DNA of 64,000 bases from Pavona decussata (GCA_977016875.1 CDRNST010000093.1:62001-126000); one strand, 5' to 3'; counted from the first letter of the stretch, positions 1 through 37,331 are shown. Program-made: numbers and translations. The notes: generated from the letters alone by a model not told the origin.

Positions 1-2165
1 TCGTTTATCTATGGCTTGGTTTATGGCTTCATGAGCTTTATATTCGTATGGTTTTTAACACCTCTCACCCGTGCCTTCCTCATTCCACTAGGGCTGATGG
101 CGAAAATTTGGCTCCTCATTGTCAAGTGCTTTTATGACCCGTTATACGAGTCATGTGGAAGGATCTTCTCCAATGTGAACATCAACTTCAATCACCGTAC
201 TATTCTAAATGTGTAGGTCTCCTTGTTTGTGACCCGGATCCGGAAGTGCGATATATCTGTATATATATGTGTGTTTGCTTCGACTTAGTTAGGCCTTGAA
301 GACATAACCTTCAGTTCCATAGCAATAGAGAATATGGAGAATGTAAACACGGTAGTTTAAGAGAAATATATTTGACAGTTGTGTTTTTTCTATACCTAAA
401 TGTTTTCCTTTCTATCAGCATCACTAGCATCATTCGGCACCAGAGGAGGGCAACGTTCCTCATTCTAAAATTCTGGAAAATTAATCGAACTTTACAACAC
501 TGAACTACTCCGGCGACACTTTGACGCCAGCAAAACAGAACAAATGAAAACGAATACTGAGGCGTTCCGGTTCCTGTGTTGAATTCTGTGTATACCCAAA
601 TTCAAATTTAGCATGTAATAGCCCTCAACTGGATGAAACGGTTCCCTCAAGTAACAAGCAGGAAAGGCCACTTGCTTCTTGAAAATATTTCTTTTTCCCG
701 GAATACCTCTGAGAGTGAATGGGTTTATACAGCAGGCTGCCTCTCTTGATTCAAATGCCATTAAATTTCTCCCCCCCCCCCCTCCCAATGACTAAAATTT
801 GAAATAAGTGTCCCTCCCCCCCCCCCCCCCTTCAACTTTTCTCTATTTTTGTTAGGCCGGGGGAGCACTGAGACAACTAAAATTTGTTTATCACTTTTCA
901 GTTTGGAACTCATAGGATTTGATCATGAACTGCTCTTGACTACAATGTTACAAGAGATGAGTTCCTTTTGTCGAACTCTCTTTTATTCAAGTTTCAAGTC
1001 CGCCAATAACTGCATTGTGTCCTCCCCACCCCTCGAATGAGCGGCCCTTGCCGTATCCTATATTTGAAGTACTAGCGCCGCCCTGGGCACTTATTCAAGG
1101 ATTTATGGTGATGTGACGTTTCTAATCAGCACGCCTTATGCTAATTTTTGACCAACTGTTATTGAGCGGCCAACACTTATTATTTTCCAGCGGGCGGCTA
1201 GCGGTTGCTAGGAGTTCATTCGGCCCGCTTTGCATTACTCGTGGAGTGATCTTATCGAGGATCCTTACCGGTCCGCTTTAATTTTGTCCATTTCGTCAGT
1301 CCATAAAAGAGCCGGTTGGTCACCAAATGCCTTTCTCTCACCGTGCCGGACAATGGCAGGCCATCCATCTGTGAGAGTTTTTTTTTCGCAGACATAATCA
1401 TGATTATGTCACACAACAGAGTGGAATGATTTTCAACATAGATGGAAGAAAGATAGAATCGAAGAAAATGATTGATAATAATAAGCAATAAGCATCCACC
1501 GTCGTATCCTCTATACATCCGTATCCGCCGCTTCCTTATAGGCGAGATCCATCCCCATGTCAAGCTAGCTAGTTACTTAAAGGTTGCGTGTGAATAGTCG
1601 TGCGGAATATTATATCATGCCCTAGTGGCGAATTGTTTAAGAAAAGGGGGAGAACTGACGTTTATACAATATAGTAACAGTATAGTTGGGGTGAAATCAG
1701 TGAGCAAATTCGAAGACAATAGAATACCAGAGCCTTAACTGGTATGAGTACTGAATGCGTATGTCATCGAACCACTCGGTTTCCAGGGCCTATGACGTGA
1801 ACTTCTCTGGTTTTAAAGAAGGCGGCAGACCCAGAGAGACATGAATGTCAGGGAACACCAGCAACATGAAAACGTTAGCATGCATGGCGGCGGCCACACA
1901 GCTGGCAATCATGAGAATGGTTGTCCTGTGCGACGCCTTAAGACAAGAACAATAAAAGTGGTTTTTCCGAGAAATCACGCGAGAAAACAAATATTCATGT
2001 CACGTCATGATCAACACAAATTATGAATACATTAAAATGAATTTCTAAGAAATCTCGCATTAAGGAAGATAATTTTCCCCTGAAAACAAAACACAACACG
2101 CACTTGCATTACAATTTCGAAGTCATTAAGGAACATTCATGAACTGTAACTCGGTCATCATCTCA

Positions 2166-2870
2166 ATGCCGAAAAAGAGACGTTTCAAAGTGGCCATATA
2201 TGCCAACGAGTACAGACAGATTTGCGCTTGGGTTTTAAAGAACCAGACTCTTGAGACAGGAGGCGATTTGTTCGGTCTCTGGGCGGACGATCGCACCGCT
2301 GTCATCCAACTGGTGTTGGGTCCAGGAGAAAACTGCCGAAGAGCGCCTCACTCCTTCTACCAAGACGTGCAATATCTTGAAAAGGTTGGCTCTGACTTGA
2401 CCGGAAAGGAAGCACTATGTCACATCGGCGAGTGGCATTCGCATCACACGATCGGTCTCACACGACCAAGCGGTGGCGATGAAGGAACCGTATGGAGAAA
2501 CATGCCAAACTACGGCCTGAACCGCTTTATTCTGTTTATTGCCAACATTGGATCGCTGTCTCCTTCTGAAGTGAGCGTCGGCTGCTTTCTGTTTGAATTT
2601 GAGAAAGGATCCAGCCGGAAGCTGCCGGTGTTAGAGGGAAGCTTCGAGCTCTTGCCGGATGAGAGCCCCTTCCGTTCAAAGTGTGTCAGCGTTTTGGGGA
2701 AAGGAGCAGAGTACATCAACAGTGACGAAGACATCGCTTGTCTTCAAGAAGTATCAACAGATGAAGCTAAAATAGCTGCAAGGCGGCCAGTAATGAGGGC
2801 TGAAGAGTTGTCACAAAGTCAAAGGAAAAAGAAAAGGCGCTGTCCTTGTCCGTGGTGCACAATGCTGTGA
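2166..2870 (+). CDS. JAB/MPN+ (JAMM) metallopeptidase, prokaryote-like, single domain (JAB-A), with a C-terminal polybasic CaaX tail
   Basis: Uninterrupted ORF (in-frame ATGs at 2139 and 2166; 2166 matches the start of paralog JAB-B). It has ETGGDLFG (catalytic Glu) and IGEWHSHHTIGLTRPSGGD (JAMM HxH...SxxD). It ends RKKKRRCPCPWCTML. Confidence 0.88.
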   Translation: MPKKRRFKVAIYANEYRQICAWVLKNQTLETGGDLFGLWADDRTAVIQLVLGPGENCRRAPHSFYQDVQYLEKVGSDLTGKEALCHIGEWHSHHTIGLTRPSGGDEGTVWRNMPNYGLNRFILFIANIGSLSPSEVSVGCFLFEFEKGSSRKLPVLEGSFELLPDESPFRSKCVSVLGKGAEYINSDEDIACLQEVSTDEAKIAARRPVMRAEELSQSQRKKKRRCPCPWCTML

Positions 2871-4639
2871 ACTATCACATATTATATTAACACAGTTACT
2901 TTACACTACATTGCATTATAAGACAAAAAAAAAACATATCCCGGCCACTGAAATTGATGTGTAGCCGTTTGGTCTCAATATACCGGTGTCTAAGGGTGTG
3001 ATATTTTTAACTTGTACAGAGTAAAAGTATCTGGCCGGGATATGTATATGCAGCATATTTATCAATTGTCGCCCACATGCTGGCTCAAGAAGTCACTCGG
3101 AACTATGTGATAAAGCAGCAAATCGTGTAGGATTTACACGCTCTATTGCCTCGTGTCAGTGCATCATGTATGTAACTTCTAGGGTACCCAACGGTTTACT
3201 TCGGCATATATCTGCCAGTTGGATGGCCTTAATCGCCTCAGAAATTCGGGTTTCGTCGTAAAGAACATCTTCAGTTTTCTTCACTAGAGAACTAATATTA
3301 TTCGTTTCGTTTTCAAAGGTGCATGTATGTCGTTAAAAAGGAGGGGAAAAGGTCATCTAGCATTTTCATCAAACTAACAACAAGTACATTAGGTGAACAC
3401 GATTCCGTTTTCTGAAACCATATGCAACCTAAGCAAGGTTGGCAATATTGGCGGGGAAGCAATATGATCTTGGAGATTATGGCCTGCTCCAAGTACCTGC
3501 TCCAACATGCCCATGAAATTACGCGTAGAAAGTCATTGTCTTCTATACTTCGTACCGGAGTGCATGTGAAAACGAGTGTTGTGATCCCAATTAGGTGTAA
3601 GATGGCATTTTTTTGCTTGTAAATTGAAAAATAAAACCTGGCGGCTGAAAAACGAGCTCTGACTCCAACTGTACTGAGTGTTACCCAACATGGCTCCCAG
3701 GGTCTTTCACCTCCCCACCCCATCCCAGAGTTAGAGAGGTTGTCTCGTACGCCCACCATGGCTATGCGTTTGGTTGTATGTCCCCACGAGGTATGATCGA
3801 AGAAAGCTTTAGTCATGTGAACGCACCCAAGGGGAAACGTAGGTGTAAAGCAAAATAAGGGTGGTTTAATTTCTCGCGCAGTCGTTCGGTGAATTATATT
3901 TTTCGAGAGGTTGCAAAATTGGCGAAATATATCACACGTTGTACAGATCCATTTTGAAGATTAAAATGCCAGTGCAATCAGTTAACTTTGATTTGTAAAC
4001 CATCTGAACCGATCTTACAACAGCTAAGTTTTCTCAAAATGTTAGTCTTGATCATTTTGCTCAGGTTGGATACTAAGTTACAAAAAGTTTAGATGCCGAA
4101 TATAATAATTCCAAAAATCTGGCATTCTTTACATAATATGTTGCCGTGGCAACGGTTCCTAAGATACGAAACCAACGGATAATTAAAAATTTAAGAGGTC
4201 ATTTAACGTTTCTAGAATCCAGGCTGCATGCAATTTTAAGAGAAAAGGCTACCGGAAAACGTCAGCAGCTCAAACTCGACGTGGTTTGTGTAGGTACTAA
4301 TTATAATTTTAAAGAATAAACTGCAAAGGACCGCAGAGAAAATGCTGCAAGTTTACGCAGGATCTGTAAAAGATCTAATCAGCCAAAAATAAACATAACC
4401 TAATTTTAAGAGCATGGTTGTCTTTTCTCCCCTCCCACCACTCCACATATATTTTGTTTGCGTTGCCTCACTTCCAGTTTTCAGCTTCACTTAGAACTAC
4501 GCAAGCTTCGTAGTTCGCACATTTTGAGTCAGTTAAATTGTGCGTTTACCACAATCGTCAGTAGTTGATTTTTCTTTTTAAAGGATGGATTTACCTTTAG
4601 GAGAAAATTTATTCTTTGATCCTACAACTGGAAGACTTT

Positions 4640-4868: not shown

Positions 4869-5851
4869 CTGTATTTGTCAGCGTACCACGGCCGAAAACA
4901 TTGACACTCAACTCGATATGATGTGATTCAACTTACTCGCACGCAACTGACCGTATTTGTGTAGAAATTGAGTATGACGCTCCTGACTATGGTATGGTAG
5001 AATACTGTTGCACTGTAACTATCGGCTTAGAGAGATCAACATGCACATTATCTTATTGTGTTGTACTTGGTTTAGCAGCAAAAATAGCGGCGGATGAAAC
5101 AAAATGGCGTCTCCTCTCGTAGGCTGAAGTTGATTTGCCGTTTGATATTCACCCGCTCAGTTAACTGTGTATGTACGTGGCTTTGTGTAACATTCATGTA
5201 TTATATATGTCATTTATGTAATTTGCACTGAGTTTGAAGAACACTACCCATATTACTTATATTAATACATTTAAAGCATATCTAGCTTAATATAAATAAA
5301 GCTTTAATCAAGCCATGTTAGTCAGCGTGATGGTGCCAGGGGAATCGATACACTGTACTAAGCACATAGGCACACATATTACACTTTAATTGTGATCAGA
5401 CGAAAAGCAAATGGGTCCTGTTTTGTAGAGTCTAGCATAGATATGATTATGTCACGCTTAAGACTATTTACAGTAAACATGGTTTCAGAGGAACGATTTT
5501 CAATAAAAATAGGAATTTTGCTTTAACCATATTCAGGAGTGCATATGAGAAATCCATCTCTACATCGAACTTTTGACTTAACTTTTGTTTGTTCGTAAAA
5601 TTGAAGTTATGCACATTCATTTTAGTTTGTTTTGACATCCGCGATTTCCGAGAAATGTCATTAGAATTCACAATTCAAGTCACGCTTGACAAAATGAAAA
5701 GTGTAACTTTACTATTGGCATCATCACAAGATATAAATACATCACAACGAATTTCTGCGAAATAATTTTAGTTCGAAAACAAAACACTGCAGGCACTCAC
5801 ATTATAGTTTTGGAAGTACTTTACTTTTTTTAAAAGCTGATCAGCATCTTA

Positions 5852-6601
5852 ATGTCTAAGGGCAAAGAGTTCACAGTGGCCATATATGCCGACGAGTACA
5901 GACAGATTTGCGCTTGGGTTTTAAAGAACCAGACTCTTGAGACAGGAGGCGATTTGTTCGGTCTCTGGGCGGACGATCGCACCGCTGTCATCCAACTGGT
6001 GTTGGGTCCAGGAGAAAACTGCCGAAGAGCGCCTCACTCCTTCTACCAAGACGTGCAATATCTTGAAAAGGTTGGCTCTGACTTGACCGGAAAGGAAGCA
6101 CTATGTCACATCGGCGAGTGGCATTCGCATCACACGATCGGTCTCACACGACCAAGCGGTGGCGATGAAGGAACCGTATGGAGGAACATGCCAAACTACG
6201 GCCTGAACCGCTTTATTCTGTTTATTGCCAACATTGGATCGCGGTCTCATTCTGAAGTAAGCGTCGGCTGCTTTCTGTTTGAATTTGAGAAAGGATCCAG
6301 CCGGAAGCTGCCGGTATTAGAGGGAAGCTTCGAGCTCTTGCCGGATGAAAGCCCCTTCCGTTCAAAGTATGTCAGCGCTTTGGGGAAAGGGGCAGAGTAC
6401 ATCAACAGTGAAGAAGACATCACTGGTCTGGAGGAAATATCAGCTGATGCGGCCGAAAGAAACACAACGCGACCTGTGATGTCTCGTAAACGGAAGAGAC
6501 CACACGTGGAACATCAAAATGAAGATGAAGAAAGAGACGTTAAAGCTAAAACCGTAAAAAGGCTCTACCCTCCTGACACATCTGTTTTTACTAGTCATTA
6601 G
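5852..6601 (+). CDS. JAB/MPN+ (JAMM) metallopeptidase (JAB-B), near-identical core to JAB-A, with an NLS-like tail
   Basis: ETGGDLFG and IGEWHSHHTIGLTRPSGGD motifs. The C-terminal tail contains RKRKRP...KTVKR. Confidence 0.88.
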   Translation: MSKGKEFTVAIYADEYRQICAWVLKNQTLETGGDLFGLWADDRTAVIQLVLGPGENCRRAPHSFYQDVQYLEKVGSDLTGKEALCHIGEWHSHHTIGLTRPSGGDEGTVWRNMPNYGLNRFILFIANIGSRSHSEVSVGCFLFEFEKGSSRKLPVLEGSFELLPDESPFRSKYVSALGKGAEYINSEEDITGLEEISADAAERNTTRPVMSRKRKRPHVEHQNEDEERDVKAKTVKRLYPPDTSVFTSH

Positions 6602-7706: not shown

Positions 7707-8308
7707 CACCGAACAAGTGTCTTCTTCAAGCTGTCAAGCAGTTCCAGTGTTGCGAGCTGATTCAAATGTTAAACGGGAGAATATCAATTGTACTGGACTT
7801 AACTATTGCAGTCATCATCAGCTTAAACGGGCAGCTTAATCAGTGGAGGCCTTTTAAATTTAAATTCGAACATTGCCGTGTTCTTTTCATTTCTGTGAGT
7901 GTATCGTGGTTAATCTAATGTATTGATAGTTTTGATACGACTAGTAGCATACACAAAGAACTGAAAGACCGAGTGTTCTTCTCGGTGAACTTATTTTCGT
8001 ATATTATGTCTTAAAGATGAAGTCTTCGCTCAAATAGGTTAAATCATCTCATTTATGTATATGATGAGAAAATGAAACGACTTAGATTAAATGTATGGAA
8101 AGAAGCAGTTGCGACAGGCTCTTAGCTTAGCAAAACTACGTGCTGATTTGCGAGAAAATGCACACACGTGTCACGGTCGTGATCTCCCTCAGTGATCGAT
8201 GATTATCGACATGCATCATCATATTTACTAAAGCTTAAGGATTATCTATATGGAATGTAGAGAAGCCAGTGTAAAGTTTAGGAACCCAGTACCTGGTGAT
8301 AGTTCAGC

Positions 8309-9695: not shown

Positions 9696-9810
9696 TTCCA
9701 AGAATGAAAAAGCATCATATGCTAACGTAAGGGGAAACCCCAGAACATGATCGGCCAATAATTTTAGGGGTGTTATTTCTAAGAATATGATTTCTTCCGG
9801 TTTCGATTTC
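9696..9810. promoter_or_regulatory. Cluster of GAS, kB and ISRE-like motifs upstream of the ThiF/E1 CDS
   Basis: TTCCAAGAA 9696-9704, GGGGAAACCCC 9731-9741, TTCTAAGAA 9777-9785, and GGTTTCGATTTC (reverse complement GAAATCGAAACC) 9799-9810. Confidence 0.5.
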
Positions 9811-9863: not shown

Positions 9864-11156
9864 ATGCATGAGGTACAAGATGAACGTAAAGTTGTCTGCT
9901 TTCTGCAGCCCAATTTTACTGATGTCCTTAAAAACAACGACGCTGGTGAAAAACGGTTTTCTGTGACTGTATTTGACGACTGTGACACGCTTCACGTCCG
10001 GGTTCATTGCAACGATAAATCGTCTAATCCAGAGCCCGAGAAACGCGTCGCGTTCAAGGTCTTTAAAGAGCTGCCTCAGTGTTCGGAGATTTTAGATATT
10101 GCTTCTAGTCTCATTTCCAGCCTCCCAGCCCTTGATGTACCACAGGTCGCAATTTTGGTTTCCGAAGACGACCATGTCAGAGCTTGCGTGAGACCAAAGT
10201 CAACCGAACTGCTAGAACAAGCAGCCGTCCTTCGCCAACCACGAAAAGCCCAGCTCTACTCCCGAAGCCATGGCATACTGGAGTCGAGTCTTCTGGAGGA
10301 CCGCAAGGTTGCAGTAGTCGGGCTCGGTAGCGGTGGTTCCCAAGTGGTTATAGAGCTTGCTAAGGCTGGAGTTGGCAAGTTTATACTGGTCGATTTCGAT
10401 CGAATCGAGCTTCACAACATCGTCCGCCATGTTTGTGGTTTAAGCGATCTGGGACGCCTGAAGACCAATGTCATGCGAGACCGTATCTTGGACAAGAACC
10501 CGTTCGCTGAGGTGGAAATCTACAACACCAACATCAACAATTTAGAAGACGCCAGAAAAATTCTCACGGGAAGCGACATTATCATCGCAGCCACAGACAA
10601 TATCAGAAGCAGGCTTAACATCAACACCCTGTCCATAGAGCTTGGAATTCCCACCTTGTATGGGAAATGCGCTGTGAGAGCTGCAGGAGGAGAGGTGCTG
10701 CGTGTGAGACCGAAGGTAGGTCCTTGCTTCTCCTGCATCTATGCGGATGCATCTATGGAAGCTGCTGCAGAGGAGATGTCTTCCTTCCGCCAAGCGCGCG
10801 AGGCTAATCCACCATACGTTGGAGACGATGAAGTGAAAGCTACCATTCAAGTTGGGCTGTCTTCTGACATCAACCCCGTGTCTAATATGCTAGTGAAGCT
10901 TGCTCTGGTGGAGCTGTGTCGTGGTAAAGACAGCGCTCTGAAGACTCTGGAGAGCGATCTGGAGGCTCCATACTACATGTGGGCCAATCGCAGAGAGCAG
11001 CAGTATGCCGGGTACCCAGCAGATGGCTTCCACAGGTTTGACAAGCCCGCTATTCTGAGGTGGTACCCAATGATGAGCGAAAGAAAAGCTGACTGCAAAA
11101 CTTGTCAAGACATGGAAGTGAGCGAGGAAAATGTCGATTTTTTCGCTGGAAAATAA
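9864..11156 (+). CDS. ThiF/MoeB/E1-like adenylyltransferase with an unassigned ~140-aa N-terminal domain
   Basis: LYSRSHGILE..L..RKVAVVGLGSGGS (GxGxxG), DFDRIELHNIVRH, GRLKT, ATDN and two Zn-binding CxxC motifs (CFSC, CKTC). The first ATG is at 9864. A splice-acceptor-like ttattcttttccag ends at 9834, so an upstream exon is possible. Confidence 0.92.
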   Translation: MHEVQDERKVVCFLQPNFTDVLKNNDAGEKRFSVTVFDDCDTLHVRVHCNDKSSNPEPEKRVAFKVFKELPQCSEILDIASSLISSLPALDVPQVAILVSEDDHVRACVRPKSTELLEQAAVLRQPRKAQLYSRSHGILESSLLEDRKVAVVGLGSGGSQVVIELAKAGVGKFILVDFDRIELHNIVRHVCGLSDLGRLKTNVMRDRILDKNPFAEVEIYNTNINNLEDARKILTGSDIIIAATDNIRSRLNINTLSIELGIPTLYGKCAVRAAGGEVLRVRPKVGPCFSCIYADASMEAAAEEMSSFRQAREANPPYVGDDEVKATIQVGLSSDINPVSNMLVKLALVELCRGKDSALKTLESDLEAPYYMWANRREQQYAGYPADGFHRFDKPAILRWYPMMSERKADCKTCQDMEVSEENVDFFAGK

Positions 11157-12852: not shown

Positions 12853-13337
12853 CTTGGAAGTCTGACTTGCAAAACAGTGACTAAACAGATTCTTTTGCTT
12901 TGTACTGCAACGATTAGCGCAAACAGAATATCCCCAGTTATCCAAGTTCGCTTTCACAAGTTTCGCTAGTGCTTGCTTTCGCTTCCGTGCTCTACGGACT
13001 CAGTGCTTTCGGTTTCGAGCGCAGCTTCTTTGTTATGTGATTGCGGGCATGACGTCATCCATATGATTTTGTTTTCTTGGAATTTGAAGGGACTTTTTGA
13101 CAACTGTCGAGTCATGCCCTAATAGGGAAATAAGCGGAAGTAGGGTCTTGTGTAACAAAAGGGTTTTTCCCTGATAAATAAAAAATGAAAGCGCAACAAT
13201 AAATTATTGTTGACGACGACGTGGGTATAATATTCTGCAGAAAAGGAGACGGGAGTGATTATTTGATTTCCTAAGTTATTCAACAGAATATCCTAGCGAC
13301 ATCCTAAACAGTAATTGAATATAAAAAACGCATTGAC
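12853..13337. promoter_or_regulatory. Probable bidirectional promoter region between divergent P3 and P4
   Basis: CTTTCGGTTTC (reverse complement GAAACCGAAAG, ISRE-like) 13006-13016, TGACGTCA (CRE) 13050-13057, TTCTTGGAA (GAS) 13074-13082, and AAATGAAAGCG at ~13183. Confidence 0.45.
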
Positions 13338-13661: not shown

Positions 13662-14713
13662 ATTCAGCATACAAACAACAATCTTGGCTTGGATATCTCA
13701 TGTGGATAGGCTTTAAAAACACTGACCAGTTACATTGCATGACTATTCAATTCCATGACTATTTAATTAATGCACCGGGCATGTAAAATCCTTAGAACAT
13801 TTGGAACCGACATATGTTAGAGTTAGCAGAATAAAATGAAAGCGTGACGTTGGGCTTGTGTTGACCTTGACCAAGAGAACTAAGGCACTAATATCATGGC
13901 TATGTAACTCTCTGGGTTGATAATGAAAGGAAAGTCTGTTTCTGTCAAGAGTAGTTTAGATAATTGCGATTTCTTAGAAACCTGGCTCGTTACATGTAAT
14001 AATGACCCTGACATTATCACTTTAGCGCGTTCAAAACATTTCTTAGAAAAAGAGGAAGACTTAATTAAACCTGTCAAGTGTCAAAAATGACGGGAAAGAA
14101 ATACAATAGCCGACGAGGTGTGGAATTTTCCTTTCGACATTTCTAACCCTCAACGGCATGCACTGAAATATGTCACGACAGATAAAATAAAAGCGTGGTC
14201 TTGCAGTAGAGGCCTGAGGCACAAAAAGGGAAAATAAACTCTCCAGTTGCCAATAGAGAGACTGTCTGTTGAGAGTAGTTCATATAAGACTGGTTTTTAA
14301 GAGACCTGCCTCGTTAATTATGACTCTACCATGAAAACTCGTGCAACAATACTGAAAAACATTTCTCAGAAAATGAGGAAGACTAAACTCCAGCTGTCAA
14401 ATATTGGCATGGTATGGATAGGTATGGATAGGGTTTTATTTTCGACTAAAGCCAAATATTTCAATGTCGGGGTAGTTCAACGTTCTTTTGTAAAAAAGTT
14501 CCCAAATTAAACTCTCTCACGCAAGGAGTAATTGATGGTAAACAACGACTGATGAATGAATGAAATTGAAATTTTCTCGGAAACCACACCGTCTGGTGCG
14601 CATGTGCACTCGGGAACAGCAATGCAAATTAATAACAGAAGACGCCATTTGCACAAAGTTCCACACAGTTCACGGTGATAGTGCAGACGAGCGATTTATA
14701 GCGGGATAAAGCT

Positions 14714-16168
14714 ATGGCAGCCAAGAGAAGTAAGTGCCCGAAAATTTACATGTACAGTAAAGATCGTGAACGGCTAAACAAGTTTGTCAGTGAACATAAA
14801 GATGGGGAAACTAGCGGCGATCTGTTCGGTTTGTGGACAGACGACAACGAGATCGTTATTCACCTAGTTACAGGACAGGCCGGAAGTGACCAGCATCAGG
14901 CTGAAAAGCGCTCGGCCTCATCAAATACGGAGGATGACACGAAAAATATGAGAAAAGCTTTGATGAAAACTTTCGGGCTCCCTCGCATTGGACAATGGCA
15001 GTACACGACCGACGAAAATAAAAGCAGAAGTATGATGGTGGCAGCCCTACGAGGCGATAAAGGATTATTTAAAAAAGAAATCGAAATTTCGAGAGCTCTG
15101 CTCATCACAGGGAACTACGACCGATCTGAGGTGCAGTTATCCCCGTATCTTGTGTCCACCACCTCAGTCTCAAGCAAAGGGGAAATTGACACCCTTGAAG
15201 ACGAAAGTATCTTCAGGCAAGTTGACGAAATTAGAAAGATTACCGGCGAAACAGTGGCAAGCGTAAGTGGCCGAGAAGTAAATGAAAGGAAAGGCGAGAT
15301 GAACAAAGGCCCAACCACCATTGATGAAAGTAGCTACAAGAAAGCGATCACCAGTAAAGAATCCGTCGAGACCGGTGTGGGACATAGCAATCTTGATTCA
15401 ATGTGGGAATCATACGAAAGGATACCAAGGGCACAACTAGGCCGTACCAACCCTTTAACGGTTTACGTGTTTCAGGAAGACCTAGATATGGTGTCAAGGC
15501 TGGTTCTTGCGTATCCAGATGTGGAAACTGGGGGAGACTTGTTTGGTTTGTGGACGTCCGAGGGTGATGCAGTGATACACATAGTACTAGGTCCTGGAAA
15601 ACATTGTAGCCGTACAAACGTGTCCTTCAACCAAGATATCCCTTACCTAAAGAATAACGGTGAGCTCCTTACCCAAGACTACATGTTATGCCACATTGGA
15701 GAATGGCACTCCCATCATCAGCTGCGCCTCTTCCGTCCCAGCGAGGGAGACTCAACGACCGTGATTAGGAATTACCCCCAGAGTGTCCTAGGGTTTATCT
15801 TGATCATTGCTAACATCGTGGAGCGTGGCAGGGCGGTGAAATTGTCGCCCTATCTATATACGCAGAAATCCAAGTTTACCTATGACAAAGAGGGGAAGGT
15901 TATTTCTTTACCAGCTCGAAATGTCTTCAAGGAAGTACCCAATGTTCAGAATGTCATGGAAGAAGGAAAGGAGACGGAGCAAGACGTCCAGCGCTATTGG
16001 ACGTCGCGTCATCAGCAGTACCAGACGGCTAGGAGAAAGGGTCACCCTTGTCGAGGCCTATCACCGGCAAGAACCTATCCACCGGGACACGGCAGCACGG
16101 AGGAACCTATGGATGTGGATCCTCCTGAATATGCGCACAGAAATAGGCAATCAAAAGCGAGGCGTTAA
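14714..16168 (+). CDS. Tandem JAB protein (JAB-C): N-terminal degenerate JAB plus C-terminal intact JAMM
   Basis: Domain 1 has ETSGDLFGLWT...IGQWQY and lacks HxH. Domain 2 has ETGGDLFGLWT...IGEWHSHHQLRLFRPSEGD. Confidence 0.88.
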   Translation: MAAKRSKCPKIYMYSKDRERLNKFVSEHKDGETSGDLFGLWTDDNEIVIHLVTGQAGSDQHQAEKRSASSNTEDDTKNMRKALMKTFGLPRIGQWQYTTDENKSRSMMVAALRGDKGLFKKEIEISRALLITGNYDRSEVQLSPYLVSTTSVSSKGEIDTLEDESIFRQVDEIRKITGETVASVSGREVNERKGEMNKGPTTIDESSYKKAITSKESVETGVGHSNLDSMWESYERIPRAQLGRTNPLTVYVFQEDLDMVSRLVLAYPDVETGGDLFGLWTSEGDAVIHIVLGPGKHCSRTNVSFNQDIPYLKNNGELLTQDYMLCHIGEWHSHHQLRLFRPSEGDSTTVIRNYPQSVLGFILIIANIVERGRAVKLSPYLYTQKSKFTYDKEGKVISLPARNVFKEVPNVQNVMEEGKETEQDVQRYWTSRHQQYQTARRKGHPCRGLSPARTYPPGHGSTEEPMDVDPPEYAHRNRQSKARR

Positions 16169-16629: not shown

Positions 16630-16824
16630 NNNNNNNNNNNNNNNNNNNNNNNNNNNNNNNNNNNNNNNNNNNNNNNNNNNNNNNNNNNNNNNNNNNNNNN
16701 NNNNNNNNNNNNNNNNNNNNNNNNNNNNNNNNNNNNNNNNNNNNNNNNNNNNNNNNNNNNNNNNNNNNNNNNNNNNNNNNNNNNNNNNNNNNNNNNNNNN
16801 NNNNNNNNNNNNNNNNNNNNNNNN
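16630..16824. other. Assembly gap (N run)
   Basis: Run of n characters. Confidence 1.
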
Positions 16825-17874
16825 TATCAAACAACAGAAAGACAACACTAGTTGGTGGGTGATTTTAGACTCGTTGTTTCGGAATTGAGCAGGATCAAAA
16901 GAGAAAGTAAAAACAACCGGAGGCAGGGAGTTCCACTGAAGTATAGTTCTAGGCTAAAAGGACAGTCTGTGAGAGGTAGTAGAAGTGGAAATCGGAATGA
17001 AGGAGTGATCATCTTTTATTCTGCGGATTGGTGAACGCAAACTTGTCTCCTTGATTCACTGCAAGTAAGTTGCTAGTGTTCTTATACAACATGGTTAGGC
17101 GCGCATCGACTCTTCTCTGCTCTAGGGTTCGCCAGTTGAGCTCTTTAAACATCACTGTCACGCTTGCTAATTGCTGTTATCTCCCCAGTGCCTATCTGGC
17201 GGCCCATCGCTGCACCATTTCCAAGTTATAGGAACCATTCTTTTATACGCCCGTACGAGGGTCCCAAACATTACTACAGTATTCCAACTGAGGCGTAGTT
17301 ATGATGCGTTTGTTGCAAACCGGCCCCTGGTTTTTGCTGTTACCAAAGTTTGAAGAGATTTTGCCTTAAATGGATAGCTTGTTGGATGACATTCAACGTA
17401 TGCTTAGTTGATGTTATGGGCTATGACGCTGTTGGAGGGGCTGTGACGTCATCCAAAATGGTTGTCAAGATGGCATCTGTAAATAGGGTACAGATTTCTT
17501 CCTGTTTTACAGGAAAGGAAAGTCGATAAACATAAATATTTTGTGACTCTCAAATCAAGATAAAGAAATTGCGGCAAAAGCATAGCTGACTACCAACCGA
17601 TTTTCCAGCGCTTTCTTTCTTGTACACTTGGAGGAGGAGCCCCTCCCAGTTTTGTTGTTGTTGTTGTTGTTTATTTATTTTAGTTTTGTTTTGTTTTAAT
17701 TGTTTTTTGAGTAATCTTTAGCAATTTCTGCGCAATTCGGTGCAAATTTCCAGTTGCTGTAGAGCGATTTGAAAGAAAAAAGAAAAGAAAAATTAATATT
17801 TGGAAGATGAGTGGTAGTATCGACAGAGAAAAAGTAATTTTCTGTATTCCCCAAATAGCAAGATGCTGTTCAAT

Positions 17875-18250
17875 TTTAGTCTCGAGTCTTTTATCATCAG
17901 AGGTAATTTTAAAAGAACCTGACTAGAAAAATCGTAAGTATTGAATATGGCCTCAGTGAATCCAGACGACACAACATTTCCGAGAAAAGCCCGAACGGAT
18001 AAAATGCGCCATGCTAAAACAGTTCCTAATATTTACATACATTTGAATATATGAAGATTAAACCGAAGGGAAAATAAAAACTGCATCTAGGAACGTTCAT
18101 CTTGAAATTAAAAACTTTGAAGAAATCGGCGACGATAGTGAAACCTGAGGCTTTTCAAACGATAAAAAGTCGGACGCGTTTCTTGGAAATTGTAAGACTT
18201 ATAGCACATTTGTAAAGTATGAGTTACTTCTACTCCGTGATCTGACAACC
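17875..18250 (+). repeat. Orphan duplicate of the JAB-E upstream region
   Basis: Colinear similarity to ~24165-24597, e.g. cacaacatttccgagaaaagcc.gaacggat.aaatgcgccatgctaaaa and taggaacgttcatcttgaaatta. No JAB ORF follows it. Confidence 0.8.
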
Positions 18251-18472
18251 CACCCTGTGATTTTGATAGGCTATGTCGGTGTAAGTAGGGCTATACTGCA
18301 AATAAACTTCGCATTTTTATTCTCAAGTTATACTGAGTAAAAATGAAGGTGTTCAGGGAAATGGCTTGGCCCTATTTATATGCCACTGTATTAGTAACTC
18401 GACTCAAAATAATTGACGGTGTCAGTTTTGCTGCTATTTATTTTGTTATAGGTATATCTTTCCACCTACTTT

Positions 18473-18515
<43 letters not shown>

Positions 18516-18516
18516 G
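18473..18516. repeat. (CTGT)n microsatellite
   Basis: Direct reading. Confidence 0.95.
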
Positions 18517-18969
18517 ACTGTTTGTCCGCCGGTTTGACTGTCTATAGATGTATCTACCAAAAGATCTGGATATTAGCAGATATGTCGATATTCTAAGAAA
18601 CCAGACAACACCTTTTACATGTTTCGATCTTCTTAGAGCATCCTAGATTTTCTTAGAGAATCCTAGATCACGCTCCTACCACCTTTCAACTTAAGACAAA
18701 AGAAGCCATTCATATTCAATGGGAAAAACCTACACTTAATCATCAACTGTATCATGTTATTTTAAAACTTTCTCTGTAATATTTTACATTGTCATGTTTC
18801 CTTTGTGCTTATAGTTAATCAGCATTTTGGTTTACACTATATATTCAACTCTGTGCTTTGTAATTTAAACTGAAGATGACAGAAGTTTCTGTCGAAACAT
18901 GTTTCCAAATTTAAAAAGTGTTGTGTGGTTTCTTAGAATATCCACCTATCTATCCACCTCAATGTGTCT

Positions 18970-19283
18970 CTATCTGAGTGTCTCGCTAGCCTCAAGGCTC
19001 CAGAGCTGAGAGATGATGCTGTTTGATCGCCACCTCTTAGTGAAGAAACCACCTGATTCGATTTTGTACAAATCGACCATAACAGGTCTTTCGCCGGTAG
19101 ACCCAGGGGCTATTCGTCGTGTTTGTCTACAACAACATATGAAGGAAAACATCGTTGTGAATTGTAGATCTCGTCTCGGCATCACCTTCAACTTCCCTGT
19201 CGTTGGGTCAAAAAACAGTTCTTCCCTGACCTGCCTCTTCTGCTCTCTAAATGTTCTTGAATTTCGCATGGGTTGGATGACAT
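18970..19283 (-). pseudogene. Small GFF-motif protein P5, frameshifted paralog of P3
   Basis: ATG at 19283 gives MSSNPCEIQEHLESRRGRS (compare P3 MSSNPQRIQQHLENRGGSS). A frame change near 19225 then gives EELFFDPTTGKLKV...GERPVMVDLYKIESGGFFT. Confidence 0.75.
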
Positions 19284-20272
19284 GTTAGAAAACAAACTCA
19301 AACAACGGACCAGTGGTACGTACGCGTTAATAGTTTGCTAACTTACACGATCACGAGGATGCTTTACGTACGGGTCAGAGAATTCGGGACGTCCCGAGAC
19401 TGAGGATTTCAGTGATATCGGACACTGTTCAACATCTGCTCTTTAGAGTTCATAGATACAAGCAACGCGCTGTAAACCGTTCTCTTCCCGTATTAGAAAT
19501 TGAAAGCAATGTCCAAATCAAAAGCTTAAGTCACTTCTCTGTGCCTTATAAGGTTATCCGCATAAATTCGTTTCGAGCAGAATAAATTACAATACTGATT
19601 CTCTCATGTCGTCTTAGCATTAGTTACCCTCATTGTGACAGGGGAATAAATGTATCTTAATCTGTAGAAAGTGTGTTACATCAAATCTTATCCTCCGAAT
19701 GTCAGATCGTAGCTGCTGTTATTTCTTCTAAAAGCCCTGAGCGGCGGGCTTCAATACAACTTTCTTGTCCTCGTTAATTTTATCAATGGTGCGACGATTT
19801 TTCAGGGAAAAAGTCAAGTGGTTCTTCAGATTTAATCCGGATAGTAGATTGGGGAGACTAATAACTTACTCAGCTGGTGCCCGTGAGATTTGTCTGAGAC
19901 TGAAATATTACCTCCGCTTGTGACATTCGTGACCGACCCGAATTGAAGTAATGGAAAATATTTCGTTTTCAAAACGGAAGTTGTGTATTTCGTTTATGCA
20001 GTTTATGATTCGAAGCGGCTGACAGAAACTAAGATTCGGTAATGCCAGTTGCAACCTATTGCGTTTTCCGGTTTAATACTAATCATGAATAAACCGAAGA
20101 ACAAACTTTAAATTATTGACGTATTATGGGAAAATAAATTTGCGTAATCAACATAGGCTTGCTACGTCCGTTCTTTCCGAGAAATCAGCTCATTGTTCGT
20201 TGCGCATGAGCAAACGCTAATAAGCGAAACCGTTGGAGAGAACTTTCTTTAGCAACGGCATTTGTTTGTGAA

Positions 20273-22417
20273 ATGCTCTCGTTAACTGGGCAAACGACTA
20301 TGGAGAGGTTGCAGAGAACCAGTCAAAGAGCTTTTATTTTCGAAGGAGATTGGAAGAGACTTCTCGCTTCCAAGACAACCCAAGAAAGACAAGGAAATTT
20401 GTTCGGCTTGTGGACAAGCGAAGGTGATCCTGTTATTCATATCATAACTGAATCAGACTGTTGTCCTAAGAGTAAACATTCTCGATTTAGTCTGGCTGAC
20501 TTCCCCGACAACCGTTTCCCTCTCGTGCATATCGGTAACTGGCGTTATGTTGGTCCTTCTTCTGCACATGTTGAAGATGAATCAACCACCCTTGCCTCTG
20601 ACTATTCCAGGTCTTGTCAGAACACAGAAGACTATTTTCTAAATATGATTATCACTGAGTCTGATATTACCCTGGAATACCGGCGCAATTTCAAGATGAA
20701 AATTTTGTTTCTTCCTAACGAAAGCCCGTTCAGGCGCTTAGCAGCTATGGAAAAGATCACCATCAAAGGCCACGACGAGAATACCGACTACGAGCTGAAG
20801 GAATCATTCGTCAAAGAGGATTACCCTACCAGACCGAGACATCATCAAATCGAAGATTCAGACGCAGATGACTTAGAAGATACACTGGAGACTTCAATCG
20901 CTAAAGGCGAACGGAAGGCCTTTATTTTCAGAAAGGATTATGAAAGCCTCCGTTTAAATGCAACTCATGGCGAAAGGCAAGGAAATCTGTTTGGCTTGTG
21001 GACAACCAACGGTGAACCTGTTATTCACGTTATTTGTCGACCGAACTGTTGTCCCAACAAGTATGACTACTCACGCCTTGGAGTAGACATCTTCAGCAAT
21101 GATTTCCCTCTCACACACATAGGCAACTGGCTTTATACCGACGTTTCGTTCTCTCATGCCCTTCCCATGAAATCACGTGGGCTTGACTCTTCATGGTGCC
21201 CTCACCAAAGCAAAGCCACCGGCAAATTTCTAGACGTCGTGATCCTAAAGTCAGCAATCCTGGTGTTACAAGATGGGCGAGAGAGGGAAATTGAGCTTCT
21301 TGACGGCAGAAGCCCGTTTAGGGACATGGAAGGCTTTAAAAGGATCGCCATAAAAGATCAGTACGATGATTTTACTACTGAGCTGGAGGAACCGATGAAA
21401 CACCTTTCAGTCACTTCAAAGCGTATCTCTCCGCATCAAAGAAAGGAAATGTCAAGTTCTCCAGATTTTGAAGATCCGCCAACATACCGTGATAGTATCT
21501 CCAGTAGAGATGGTTGGCAGGAAGGCCCAATGTATCTGGGGACGCCAGGATTTCAGCGTGACTTTACAAGCAACAGCGATGATTTCAAGGTCTTCATCTT
21601 TGAGGAGGACCTCCAAATGATGGCGAAACTCGTTCTCAAGTACCCACACCTGGAGACCGGAGGAGACCTGTTCGGTTTATGGACCACTGCAGGTGACGTA
21701 GTACTACACATTGTACTTGGCCCAGGTCAAAACTGCAAACGAACTGGAGCTTCCTTCTACCAAGATATCTCTTATTTGAAGCGAAATGGTGAGCTGCTTA
21801 CTCAAGACTACATGTTGTGCCACATTGGGGAATGGCACTCCCATCATCAGCTGCAGCTTTTCCAGCCAAGCGGGGGTGATTCATCGACCGTTATAAGAAA
21901 CTACCCTCGTGGAGTCTGTGGTTTCATTTTGATCATTGCCAACATTCTGTCATCACGTGAAGTGCAGTTGTCTCCTTATCTTTACACACAAGGGTCCAGT
22001 TATAGCTTTGATAAAAAAGGCAAACTTGTACGACTGCCTGCGCAAAGAAATGCATTTAAGACAATTCGAAGGATCAGAGATAGCATCGAGAGAGGAAAAG
22101 AAATTCAAACGCATTCCCCAAGTTTTTACCGTGACGAAGAGGACGTGAGGAACGCCTATGATCCCAGAAGACACCCAACCCAAACTGGAAAGACCATGCA
22201 AAAGATGAGCCAGGCCCGTGATCCCATGACATACACAAGGCAAAACCGTAATTACAAACAACTGCATCGACTACAAACTCGTACGCCCACTGGCCAGCTG
22301 AGCACGCCTCCGCGAAGAATATCTTCCAGTTCGAGACTGTGTTGCTTTCCAAGTAATCGTCACAAAACAGCAAGGTACAACAACAGACCGGACAATCGAC
22401 CTCCTTGGAGACATTAA
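20273..22417 (+). CDS. Triple-JAB protein (JAB-D): two degenerate JAB domains plus one intact JAMM
   Basis: ERQGNLFGLWT...IGNWRY and ERQGNLFGLWT...IGNWLY both lack HxH. The third domain has ETGGDLFGLWT...IGEWHSHHQLQLFQPSGGD. Confidence 0.88.
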   Translation: MLSLTGQTTMERLQRTSQRAFIFEGDWKRLLASKTTQERQGNLFGLWTSEGDPVIHIITESDCCPKSKHSRFSLADFPDNRFPLVHIGNWRYVGPSSAHVEDESTTLASDYSRSCQNTEDYFLNMIITESDITLEYRRNFKMKILFLPNESPFRRLAAMEKITIKGHDENTDYELKESFVKEDYPTRPRHHQIEDSDADDLEDTLETSIAKGERKAFIFRKDYESLRLNATHGERQGNLFGLWTTNGEPVIHVICRPNCCPNKYDYSRLGVDIFSNDFPLTHIGNWLYTDVSFSHALPMKSRGLDSSWCPHQSKATGKFLDVVILKSAILVLQDGREREIELLDGRSPFRDMEGFKRIAIKDQYDDFTTELEEPMKHLSVTSKRISPHQRKEMSSSPDFEDPPTYRDSISSRDGWQEGPMYLGTPGFQRDFTSNSDDFKVFIFEEDLQMMAKLVLKYPHLETGGDLFGLWTTAGDVVLHIVLGPGQNCKRTGASFYQDISYLKRNGELLTQDYMLCHIGEWHSHHQLQLFQPSGGDSSTVIRNYPRGVCGFILIIANILSSREVQLSPYLYTQGSSYSFDKKGKLVRLPAQRNAFKTIRRIRDSIERGKEIQTHSPSFYRDEEDVRNAYDPRRHPTQTGKTMQKMSQARDPMTYTRQNRNYKQLHRLQTRTPTGQLSTPPRRISSSSRLCCFPSNRHKTARYNNRPDNRPPWRH

Positions 22418-23424
22418 TCACTTCAGTGTAAACAAAACGATGTGTGAACTGAACTATAAATCAGACCCATCAACTTAAAACGGCAGAAAAAAACTAAATT
22501 CATGGATAGCCATGAATTGCGATTAGTGTATAGTATATATACATATACGACGTAGACCAGCGTTGTCCATTTATAAGACATGTAACACTGCAATGGTCTG
22601 ATTGATGAATAGTCTACTGTAAAACCTCCATGGCTAAGTTCAACTTGAAGCTGTAGAGAAAACGACATTGATAATATTTTATTAGTCATGAATCGGGCAT
22701 ACATATGTAGTAGATATATTTGCACGGGCTGAACATTTCGCCAACACTAGTAGCAAAGTTTTGTAACACCTCAATAGTCAGGTGGTAAAAGCTCCACAAC
22801 TAAGTTCAAAGAAGTGTTCTTTGCGGTTCAGAAATTCCTCTAAGTGGGTTGTTAGGTGCACTAAGACAAGGTCCAATACCTTCAAATAACGTGATCGCGT
22901 CTAGATGATTTGTAAAGTTTCGATCTTAAACACCTTCAGTTTACCATATTATAGAGTAAGTTTGTGTTATTAGAATTATATTTATACCCGCATTCAAACA
23001 CTTGCAGATTTTGTTGTGTATATATTTTACTAGAGTATAACGTCCATTGTATGCTTTGTATGCTGTATCTAGTTTATAGTTCATCCCTCTCCTATCAATT
23101 TTCCTGGGTGCTATTATGTCAAAACTAAATAATGACTGATGAATAATTATGATAGCGATAGGTACTAGATGCATGATCTCAGTAAAATGTGCACTGAAGA
23201 GCTTTTATAACATATTGCATAGTAAGAGCTAAGGTATAACGTTAACACAGCACTCAAATATTTTGTACATGAACATAGTTTTCTTGTAACACACATGATG
23301 CGAACGTGTAAAGTTCTGTAAAGTTTAATTAAAAATATAGCTGCATTGAGGGTGTGTTACAGGTACTGATGTTACGGACCCATTTCATCACTTCCAAGAA
23401 AAGCCGGATCATAATGATTGTGAA

Positions 23425-24110
23425 TCAGGGCTAAATTTCAACGATCCTCTTCGAAAGTAGACTGTTTAAGATAGCGTGACCTACTATTAGTAAATGATAT
23501 TATATTTATTGCAGTTTGATTTGGAAAAAAATCTCAAACAAAAATTGTGATAATTGATAAACTTTTGAGCAAAAGACAGAAGACCAACGGAGCATTTTTA
23601 TTTCAAAGTTGCTACCGTCTCGTTTACATTTCTGAGAAAAGCTTCATTACACTTCATGTTTATTCACAAGAAAATGGAATGAAATGTTTTAAAAGGGTAC
23701 TCGATGTAGCTCTGAAAATTCCGAGCTATCTTCACTACCCATTGGAGCGAGTGTTACATCCACTAACGTTATATACAGACCCATTAATTGATTTATATTA
23801 CATGTAATGCGATCAATGTAACATCACTTCGGAGAAACGCCGAATATTATTGTCACTTCAGGGCTAAATTTAAACGAGCCCCTTCGAAAGTAGAATGTGT
23901 GAGATAGCGTGACATATTCTATTGTACAGTGAACGCTAGATTTGGAGAAAAAATCTCAAACAAAAATCAGGATTGTTGCTGAATTTTCGGCAAAAGATTA
24001 AAGACCAAATGAAATCTTTTGTGTCAAAGCCTTCAATCGCTGCGTTTACATTTCTGAGAAAAGCTACATTGCACTTCATGTTTATTCACAAAAAAAATAA
24101 ATGAAAGCGT
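23425..24110 (+). repeat. Diverged tandem duplication (~260-bp units at ~23425-23690 and ~23857-24110)
   Basis: Shared blocks tcagggctaaattt, cttcgaaagtag, aatctcaaacaaaaat and cgtttacatttctgagaaaagct. Each unit contains TTCTGAGAA. Confidence 0.8.
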
Positions 24111-24609
24111 ATATTAAATGAAGCGCTGAAAATGTCGACCTGTTTTGATGTGTAATAAATATAATTTAGCTTCTGAGTCTTCTAACGTCAGAGGTAATTT
24201 CAAGGAAGCTGCAGACAAGAAAAATCACAGGTATTGAATATGACCTACGGTAAGTCAATCCGCGATACAACACAACATTTCCGAGAAAAGCCGGAACGGA
24301 TGAAATGCGCCATGCTAAAATAATTCCAAATATTTACATATGTGAAGAAATGAAAGAAAAAGAAAAGAAAACTTAACATAGGAACGTTCATCTTGAAATT
24401 AAGAATTTTAACAAAATCGGTGACGATGCAGTGAGAAAATTAAAAACATTGGAACCTGACGCTTGTCAAACGATGAAAAGTCGAACGCGTTTCTAGGAAA
24501 TTGTGAGGCTAGTAGCGCATGATCAATCTAATATATTAACACAAATCGAAAGCTTAATTTTCATAACGACAGTTGCTTCGACTCCGTGGTCTGAAACGCC
24601 AGTATAAAA

Positions 24610-37281: not shown

Positions 37282-37331
<50 letters not shown>

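Follow-up and report, generated by a model that had tools for sequence, protein, structure and literature searches.

A spacer-specific GAS-type motif shared by the upstream regions of a JAB/E1 gene cluster in the coral Pavona decussata

The window analysed here, a 64,000-nucleotide stretch of Pavona decussata DNA (GCA_977016875.1, CDRNST010000093.1:62001-126000), carries a cluster of bacteria-like genes, five for JAB peptidases and one of ThiF/E1 type, and raises the question of whether a short sequence recurring ahead of these genes is a control element common to all of them and, if so, what kind of protein would read it. A first-pass annotation had placed the 9-mer TTCCGAGAA, described as a TTC-N3-GAA (GAS-type) element, at 1965, 5646, 17978, 20175 and 24279 on the plus strand and at 14574 on the minus strand; all six copies are present, against 0.71 expected, and none of 100 shuffles gave six. 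The extension to the 11-mer TTTCCGAGAAA is common to six of six copies, and the distance from the 9-mer to the next JAB ATG, previously put at about 100-330 bp, measures 174, 206, 140, 98 and 331 bp for JAB A to E, respectively.

Part of this repetition reflects paralogy, as had been proposed: the 5646 copy is paralogous to that at 1965, the upstream regions of JAB B and JAB A being alignable, and the 17978 copy to that at 24279, within a 335-bp block of 75% identity. The latter block (17875..18209, plus strand) is an orphan duplicate of the promoter of JAB E, 75% identical to 24165-24520; it has sites at 17977 and 18179, and no JAB coding sequence comes after it. At JAB C and JAB D the surroundings of the 9-mer are indeed dissimilar, its flanks there showing no detectable similarity to those of the other copies. 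Without the paralogues, four exact copies remain that are independent of one another, where 0.18 are expected in the cluster's non-coding DNA; the element is common beyond paralogy.

All six genes lie on the plus strand. JAB A (2139..2870) encodes a 243-residue Prok-JAB / CBASS Cap3-like metallopeptidase (Pfam PF14464, 1e-4; PADLOC PDLC00890, 8e-16) in whose translation the H-x-H...S-x-x-D motif can be read, and JAB B (5852..6601, 249 residues) is its recent duplicate, with 91% DNA identity over 700 bp. JAB C (14714..16168, 484 residues) combines an N-terminal degenerate JAB-like repeat with a C-terminal JAB domain that has the metal-binding motif; JAB D (20273..22417, 714 residues) has two degenerate JAB-like repeats and one JAB domain with the motif; and JAB E (24610..25875, 421 residues) has an N-terminal JAB domain with the motif followed by a degenerate repeat. 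Each of the five proteins has one domain in which the full metal-binding motif, E ... H-x-H ... S-x-x-D, can be read; all five match PADLOC JAB models at 1e-13 to 1e-16 and score below the gathering score of Pfam Prok-JAB. The ThiF/E1-type adenylyltransferase (9864..11156; 430 residues from the first ATG, in a frame open from 9840) matches Pfam ThiF at 5e-35 and, through its E1 part only, the PADLOC CBASS 'E1-E2' model PDLC00829 at 3e-31, as well as NCBIfam cap2_3 weakly, all NCBIfam scores being far under the curated cut-offs; its PDB relatives are ThiF, MoeB, UBA5 and MccB. Residues 1-140, where an E2 domain would be hypothetical, match nothing: they belong to no Pfam family and fall outside the best-matched stretch of the top PADLOC model, and an AlphaFold model from four orthologues was unusable (mean pLDDT 31.6). 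A scan of ORFs in the cluster, which multi-exon genes could escape, gave no CD-NTase, STING, TIR or effector gene. An assembly gap (16630..16824) between the end of JAB C at 16168 and the orphan promoter copy leaves the genes and motifs described here untouched: no gene or motif is recognisable across it, the ORFs that span it consist of X plus 3-9 real residues per side, and tblastn with all cluster proteins gave no match between 16168 and 19039.

Sites of the TTC-N3-GAA type occur within 400 bp of the ATG of all five JAB genes and of the ThiF/E1 gene, one or two before each and a pair before five of the six; in every cluster gene they lie 56-354 bp before the ATG, which serves in place of the transcription start as the reference point for all positions given here. 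JAB A has a distal site, TTTCCGAGAAA (1964..1974, 174 bp before the ATG), which matches the best-conserved block of a cross-species alignment, and a proximal one, TTTCTAAGAAA (2042..2052, 96 bp), kept in the homologous loci L006, L008 and L012. JAB B repeats this layout, with a distal site at 5645..5655 (206 bp) paralogous to that at 1964 and TTTCTGCGAAA at 5752..5762 (99 bp). The E1 pair (9696..9785) comprises TTCCAAGAA at -168 and TTCTAAGAA at -87, with an additional upstream site, TTTCTTGGAAA, at 9450; the sites of this gene were absent from the earlier list. At JAB C the distal site (14362..14372, 351 bp) and the minus-strand TTCCGAGAA site (14573..14583, 140 bp) are joined by further upstream sites at 13970 and 14039, and the sites at 14040 and 14363 are contained in a duplicated 45-bp block. 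JAB D has a proximal site at 20174..20184 (98 bp) and an additional one, TTTCAGGGAAA, at 19800 (473 bp). The JAB E sites, at 24278..24288 (331 bp) and, as TTTCTAGGAAA, at 24490..24500 (119 bp), are preceded by a tandem duplication of about 300 bp (23386..24106, plus strand) with two sites per copy (23392/23630 and 23828/24052); relative to the 24278 site, TTTCTGAGAAAAGC at 23629 and 24051 carries a C to T change inside a CpG. Small ORFs are accompanied by such sites as well, a single one (13074..13082) lying between the divergent ORFs 12619-12852 (minus) and 13338-13661 (plus) and two (26572..26635) at 178 and 123 bp before ORF 26750-27010 (plus).

TTCCGAGAA is the most frequent form of a wider motif, A-T-TTC-Y-N-R-GAA-A-T, and enrichment was measured for this generalised form. 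The non-coding part of the first 29 kb contains 44 copies of TTC-N3-GAA, where shuffles give 9.7 +/- 3.3, and still 36 against 9.0 once paralogous blocks are collapsed; the 11-mer form occurs 24 times there against 1.1 expected, so that enrichment is about 4-fold for the generalised 9-mer and about 20-fold for the 11-mer. It is confined to a spacer of three: in the same DNA N1 (6), N2 (7), N4 (9) and N5 (12) are at chance, each against about 10 expected, and the everted GAA-N3-TTC is not enriched (11 against 10.1). An unbiased scan of all gapped 4+4-mers placed TTCC-N2-GAAA, TTCT-N2-GAAA and TTTC-N3-GAAA at the top, poly-C set aside. The first 29 kb contain 47 TTC-N3-GAA sites, 44 of them non-coding, and the remaining 35 kb of the window 15. 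While the inverted TTC and GAA half-sites are present in every site by search definition, symmetrised counts give T at -1 / A at +9 in 63-74% of sites and C or T at +3 in 84-89%, with R at +5 and no preference at the centre; the most frequent cores are CGA, CAA and TAA.

The same arrangement is found outside the window. Across fifteen promoters of homologous genes from seven loci of other cnidarians, among them an octocoral, Paramuricea, and an anemone, Actinostola, there are 39 N3 sites and 0-4 of any other spacing. Each JAB and E1 promoter of L006, L007 and L008 carries two or three sites, at near-identical positions in the case of E1: a pair with the same cores as the 9696..9785 pair lies at -173/-92 in L006 and at -156/-80 in L007, and in L008 TTCCAAGAA stands at both -154 and -85, with a third site at -34. 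Actinostola has six sites in 354 bp, with TTCCGAGAA twice, L013 has five in a shared 412-bp promoter, and the Paramuricea pairs lie at -107/-81 and -116/-90. When the regions upstream of JAB A/B are aligned across species, the block with the highest conservation is the distal site, and as far as the octocoral homologues the motif is retained while its flanks have diverged beyond alignment; two sponge homologues have no site. Its recurrence among stony-coral-like relatives, and in a sea anemone and an octocoral too, makes it almost certain that the motif is a genuine control switch that these genes share. The case for a shared element, and with it for the co-regulated cluster originally proposed, is stronger and broader than before, as the enrichment is spacer-specific, extends to E1 and some small ORFs, and is conserved across Anthozoa.

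What might bind it? A spacer fixed at three bases between palindromic half-sites suggests a protein that binds DNA as a symmetric dimer, and to our knowledge STATs are the sole well-known family with exactly this specificity (GAS, '3n'); the motif is accordingly predicted to act in cis as a conserved regulatory element that is read by a dimeric factor with STAT-type specificity. The likeness to STAT5-type TTCYNRGAA and to Drosophila Stat92E 3n sites, a qualitative one, covers the half-sites, the strict spacer, the Y/R next to the half-sites and the T/A flanks, as well as several sites per promoter and, as judged from the ATG, a putatively promoter-proximal placement. A spacer of exactly three characterises the sites of STATs other than STAT6, and CGA, CAA and TAA are the cores of classical STAT5 sites. 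The symmetric TTCC-N-GGAA, preferred by STAT1/3, is a rare form here. In work on Drosophila Stat92E, TTTCCCGGAAA is part of the 3n consensus probe, and the candidate 3n sites that were tried include TTCCGAGAA (PMC2556238).

Unlike the usual GAS systems, this one has a cnidarian host, and its sites are putative STAT targets. Because the motif fits the STAT 3n consensus and the genes match CBASS Cap3-like JAB and, over the E1 domain, Cap2-like 'E1-E2' models, we somewhat favor a reading in which a cnidarian STAT, once activated, would bind the paired GAS-type sites and switch on the whole module together; the Cap2-like E1, the Cap3-like JAB peptidases and, probably, small partner proteins of one family would then act as an inducible effector set, like vertebrate interferon-stimulated genes. 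STAT as the factor and an immune trigger are inferred by analogy, and activation rather than repression would be the sense of control. The STAT of Nematostella, a STAT5-like gene, is the only one of that species (PMC8713801); a STAT5A homologue is up-regulated in its poly(I:C)-activated immune cells (PMC13319465), and its poly(I:C)-induced genes are enriched for STAT, IRF, NF-kB and ETS motifs (PMC8476169). Knock-down of nvSTAT left the 2'3'-cGAMP response unchanged (PMC8713801), which counts against a cGAMP link in particular.

That knock-down result also lends something to an unlikely alternative, in which the conserved element would serve another factor, either a BCL6/Ken-type zinc-finger repressor or a cnidarian-specific dimeric factor with the same half-site geometry, and might silence the cluster instead of inducing it. 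BCL6/Ken-type repressors bind overlapping sequences, and several of the sites read GAGAAA(T/A), overlapping the Ken consensus; the sequence evidence defines the site and not the protein. The symmetric half-site preferences and strict N3 nevertheless fit a STAT-like dimer better than an asymmetric zinc-finger site.

It is rather improbable that the sites are of true STAT type but belong to a non-immune programme (development, wound response, nutrition, symbiosis or proteostasis), with JAB and E1 forming a housekeeping-like conjugation system. The immune reading draws on CBASS-model homology and analogy, the scanned ORFs lack the CD-NTase, STING and TIR genes noted above, and the E1 domain is equally near to its four structural relatives; but the tandem expansion of JAB genes, their fast domain turnover (one to three repeats, many degenerate), the orphan promoter and the local duplications are typical of fast-evolving defence loci, and the induction of a STAT homologue in poly(I:C)-activated Nematostella cells likewise speaks for immunity. 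The resemblance to bacterial type II CBASS Cap2 (E1-E2) and Cap3 (JAB) lies in the model matches and in JAB and E1 genes being neighbours as in operons; unlike CBASS, this locus is eukaryotic, its genes have separate promoters, the five JAB genes are paralogues that carry degenerate repeats, and the scanned ORFs include no CD-NTase or effector gene.

Taken further, the STAT reading would allow, as a tentative possibility, that the locus belongs to an ancient anthozoan STAT-driven regulon of interferon-stimulated-gene type, predating interferon and perhaps JAK. The Cap2-like E1, the expanded Cap3-like JAB peptidases and a small-protein family would form its core, a conjugation module of prokaryotic origin, and the whole would correspond in function to vertebrate ISG15 conjugation while being built from bacterial anti-phage parts; the small proteins, with their conserved L-x-F-D...G-x-L-x-V ... 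G-(F/W)-F core, may be modifier or substrate. The vertebrate ISG15 module consists of the E1 UBA7, an E2, the DUB USP18 and the modifier ISG15, all induced via STAT complexes, and the likeness is one of logic only: an E1 and deconjugating peptidases under one inducible-type promoter element. Unlike that module, the coral proteins are unrelated to their counterparts beyond the E1 fold, no ubiquitin-fold modifier was identified in the cluster, and the vertebrate genes rely on ISRE more than on GAS. The Jak-Stat component missing in cnidarians is probably JAK. Cnidarians are without one functional Jak-Stat unit that is confined to bilaterians (PMC11193209), and interferon is not known from any invertebrate (PMC8713801).

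It is highly improbable that the cluster is driven by an IRF/ISRE-type or heat-shock-factor element and that the GAS-like match is incidental. The ISRE-like GAAATTGAAA reported before the 14574 site is present at 14562-14571, directly beside the JAB C proximal GAS-type site, but there is no cluster-specific excess: GAAANNGAAA, the direct repeat GAAA-NN-GAAA, occurs 28 times in the window, evenly split with 14 copies in the cluster and 14 beyond it, and only one copy adjoins a GAS-type site. TTC and GAA are HSF half-sites as well, yet the heat-shock spacing TTC-N2-GAA, that of alternating nGAAn units, is at chance in the window (29 against 29.2) and in the non-coding DNA of the cluster (7 against 10.2), and occurs twice in 6 kb of other-cnidarian promoters. 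That the repeats are functionless, duplication leftovers or chance, has next to no likelihood: two of the six exact copies are paralogues of another two and the 9-mer was chosen after being seen, but the independent copies, the spacer controls and the conservation as far as an octocoral, across flanks beyond alignment, contradict it.

Many N3 sites of the cluster have no recognised gene within 400 bp, such as those at 11617-12213, 18352-18930 and 28224-28697; the last group, to which no gene is assigned, is at the cluster edge and is the densest of the window, with five TTC-N3-GAA in 474 bp.

The gene cluster in the first ~29 kb of the window consists throughout of single open reading frames. 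Five of these, JAB A to JAB E, encode JAB/JAMM metallopeptidase homologues that match the PADLOC CBASS 'JAB' (Cap3-type) models at 1e-13 to 1e-16 and Pfam Prok-JAB weakly; each protein has one domain with the E ... H-x-H ... S-x-x-D motif, and JAB C, D and E contain one or two additional degenerate JAB-like repeats. Between JAB B and JAB C, a further gene (E1) encodes a 430-aa ThiF/E1-type protein (Pfam ThiF, 5e-35; PADLOC CBASS 'E1-E2', 3e-31, over the E1 part), which may be an E1-E2 fusion of the Cap2 kind. Relatives of the E1 protein in the PDB are ThiF, MoeB, UBA5 and MccB; a PDB sequence search with a JAB protein gave no match, the N-terminal 140 residues of E1 have none in Pfam, and the AlphaFold model of E1 (four close orthologues; mean pLDDT 31.6) is unusable. 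Literature searches returned nothing relevant on Cap2/Cap3, or on JAB/E1 genes of the CBASS type, for cnidarians, and no account of what animal homologues of CBASS accessory enzymes do.

The 9-mer TTCCGAGAA, a GAS-type (TTC-N3-GAA), STAT-like motif, has six copies in the 64-kb window, each lying where the first-pass annotation had placed it (1965, 5646, 14574, 17978, 20175 and 24279); 0.71 copies are expected, none of 100 dinucleotide-preserving shuffles reaches six, and every copy extends to TTTCCGAGAAA. Five copies precede the JAB A to JAB E start codons, by 174, 206, 140, 98 and 331 bp. The sixth (17978) is not followed by a gene and sits in a 335-bp duplicate of the JAB E promoter, to which this duplicate is 75% identical. 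Paralogy, already proposed as a partial cause, explains two pairs among the six, and JAB A and JAB B can be aligned over their upstream regions; the copies before JAB C and JAB D are indeed flanked by sequence without resemblance to anything else. Independent exact copies number four in the non-coding DNA of the cluster, against 0.18 expected. An alignment of the six upstream regions does not bring the motifs into register and is hence uninformative, and an alternate haplotype (L003) keeps the sites but, at 99.2% identity, is too similar to add information.

The decisive control for the motif is the comparison of spacers. In the 21 kb of cluster non-coding DNA, TTC-N3-GAA is found 44 times versus 9.7 ± 3.3 in shuffles, whereas the N1, N2, N4 and N5 spacings occur 6, 7, 9 and 12 times and the everted GAA-N3-TTC 11 times, with about 10 expected for each; removal of one member per paralogous block leaves 36 N3 sites versus 9.0. 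Across the window the pattern TTTCNNNGAAA has 27 matches (3.8 expected), all but two of them within the first 29 kb, where 24 of the 25 are non-coding. At the top of an unbiased gapped 4+4-mer scan of the same non-coding DNA, after poly-C runs, stand TTCC-N2-GAAA, TTCT-N2-GAAA and TTTC-N3-GAAA, which are facets of a single motif, and the symmetrised counts give A/T-T-TTC-Y-N-R-GAA-A-A/T. Runs of at least eight C/G are far above expectation in the cluster non-coding DNA, and the remainder of the window has about as many or more.

All six genes have sites within 400 bp of the ATG, at −174 and −96 in JAB A, −206 and −99 in JAB B, −351 and −140 in JAB C, −98 (and −473) in JAB D and −331 and −119 in JAB E; E1, which was missing from the first-pass list, has sites at −168 and −87 and therefore belongs to the same set, as does at least one small ORF, at 26750 (−178 and −123). 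More sites are present in local duplications upstream of JAB E, where TTTCTGAGAAAAGC resembles the 24278 site after CpG-to-TpG decay, and some others lie in stretches without an assigned gene. At the cluster edge, 28224-28697 contains five TTC-N3-GAA in 474 bp, the densest accumulation in the window, with no recognisable gene adjoining. In the JAB A/B lineage (1880-2170 and 5560-5860), a CRE-half-like GTCACG block lies between the distal and proximal sites (ACGTCA in JAB A), and a TATA-like ATAATTTT block, found in this lineage only and reading ATATAATTTT in contig L015, follows the proximal site and could be a TATA element.

Homologous loci were retrieved via exact-protein look-ups. The named homologues belong to Actinostola, Oculina, Paramuricea and the sponge Corticium, and the homologous contigs are megabase-sized, with retrotransposon and nuclear-receptor genes; the window thus comes from a eukaryote, in all likelihood a cnidarian of the Anthozoa. 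Three related species (L006, L007 and L008) have E1 proteins 98%, 86% and 88% identical to that of the window and a common JAB-JAB-E1 order; two to three sites are present in nine of nine promoters, and those of E1 are almost position-matched (−173/−92, −156/−80 and −154/−85). When JAB A/B upstream regions from five sources are aligned, the best-conserved block is the distal site, with the GTCACG and ATAATTTT blocks also kept; one of three short Logan contigs (L012, L014 and L015) used to look for the start of the transcript, which may be genomic, still holds the distal site. In the more distant L013, two JAB genes diverge from a common 412-bp promoter with five sites, a JAB E-like gene at 8202-9587 (minus strand) standing head to head with a JAB A/B-like gene at 10001-11203 (plus strand), and a few kb from the pair are two genes for nuclear-receptor ligand-binding domains. 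Six sites, two of them exact TTCCGAGAA, lie no more than 354 bp from a JAB gene in the sea anemone Actinostola, and in the octocoral Paramuricea pairs at −107/−81 and −116/−90 precede two of three JAB genes. Over 15 promoters from outside the window (6 kb), 39 N3 sites compare with 0-4 for any other spacing, and the three most distant cnidarians alone give 16 versus 0-1. This conservation of cnidarian promoters argues that the association between motif and genes is as old as Anthozoa and was maintained while its surroundings diverged beyond alignment. In Corticium candelabrum (L009/L010, 10001-17100), three JAB homologues lie in tandem and there is also an E1-like fragment; TTC-N3-GAA is absent upstream of the two JAB homologues checked; the JAB/E1 module thus seems older than its motif association, or the sponge has another switch.

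With its strict N3 spacing, symmetric half-sites, T/A flanks and Y-N-R core, the TTC-N3-GAA element is most likely a STAT 3n (GAS) site, with which it has these features in common. Among 50 sites in 21 cnidarian promoters, including those of the window, TTCCGAGAA is found 13 times, TTCCAAGAA 10 times and TTCTAAGAA 8 times; the asymmetric cores, TTCC-N-AGAA and TTCT-N-AGAA rather than TTCC-N-GGAA, resemble STAT5-type sites. The Drosophila Stat92E consensus probe contains TTTCCCGGAAA, and TTCCGAGAA itself has been assayed as a candidate 3n site for Stat92E (PMC2556238). Nematostella has one STAT (PMC8713801); it bears the annotation of a STAT5A homologue and is upregulated in poly(I:C)-activated immune cells (PMC13319465). 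The genes that poly(I:C) induces in this species are enriched in STAT-type motifs, among others (PMC8476169). Given the 3n-type site and this literature, coordinated control of the JAB/E1 module by a cnidarian STAT, acting at the paired sites, would be the best explanation. As to what would switch the module, an immune-type trigger appears most plausible by analogy, because the enzymes are homologues of CBASS accessory proteins and because the locus has the duplication and decay that are typical of defence loci. What the sequences establish is the motif, with its spacing specificity, placement and conservation; which factor binds, in which direction it acts and what triggers it are inferred. 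The STAT/immune interpretation made at first pass is supported in part. A role in the cGAMP response in particular has against it that this response stays intact on knock-down of nvSTAT (PMC8713801). The pathway above STAT is not known for cnidarians (PMC11193209); our literature searches found no direct STAT target in a cnidarian and nothing relevant on STAT sites in corals.

Another factor with overlapping specificity, for instance a BCL6/Ken-type repressor, may recognise the same sites, and a STAT programme of a non-immune kind is possible. Pure paralogy or chance, which would fit the two duplicated pairs of 9-mers, conflicts both with the spacer controls and with the comparison across species. 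The ISRE-like GAAATTGAAA reported beside the JAB C site is present, but the meaning attached to it does not survive, GAAANNGAAA being equally common outside and inside the cluster; HSE (N2) and STAT6-type (N4) spacings are at chance.

The cis-element belongs to a known class, GAS-type; it is notable for the lineage in which it occurs, for how old its association is and for the genes it would regulate. As a candidate set of STAT targets, the locus is compact, conserved and easily mutated, with two sites per promoter, intronless genes and retention from hexacorals to octocorals, and it allows a test of whether STAT-type inducible control of effectors existed before interferons. It also connects this element with genes for animal homologues of the accessory enzymes of bacterial CBASS; if that connection is real, a bacterial anti-phage conjugation system would have come under an animal immune-type switch.

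Interspersed among the JAB/E1 genes is a family of small ORFs of about 70-110 aa, found in the window at 12619-12852 (minus strand), 13338-13661 (plus), 18970-19269 (minus), 26750-27010 (plus) and 31415-31627 (plus; C-terminal part only), and in relatives at L011 8960-9208 and L007 19111-19551 and 19618-20193. Their core, L-x-F-D-x3-G-x-L-x-V, is followed after 15-25 residues by V-x2-(M/I)-x(2-5)-G-(F/W)-F near the C-terminus; an Actinostola homologue terminates precisely at GFF, and three GAS-type sites lie upstream of it. The E1 protein has a similar ending, D-F-F-A-G-K. The small proteins could be a modifier or substrate of the E1/JAB enzymes. A Pfam scan of the small and neighbouring ORFs gave no match.

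An assembly gap (16630-16824) separates JAB C from the orphan promoter copy, and the only frames to cross it read X, flanked by 3-9 real residues at each end; no motif or gene discussed here depends on it, and it lies outside the span of L001, L002, L004 and L005, which come from the same genome and are identical to the window. Searches with every cluster protein (tblastn) found nothing in 16168-19039, and the orphan region looks like rearrangement debris. Adjoining the gap, a short frame at 17009-17161 (minus strand) contains L-x-W-x2-L-x2-R-R ... R-L-x-M-L-Y-K, which we take to resemble the C-terminal portion of ORF2 from a non-LTR retrotransposon; an endonuclease/reverse-transcriptase gene (Pfam) lies within 1-2849 of L006, near the cluster of that relative. 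The orphan region also holds a (TCTG)n microsatellite (18473-18526). In the other half of the window, where the motif is at mere background level, an exon-like frame at 36914-37381 (minus strand), beside a second gap (37383-37855), matches Beta-lactamase (PF00144, 2e-6) and has an acidic low-complexity run before it; the frame probably belongs to a LACTB-like gene with several exons that lies outside the cluster.
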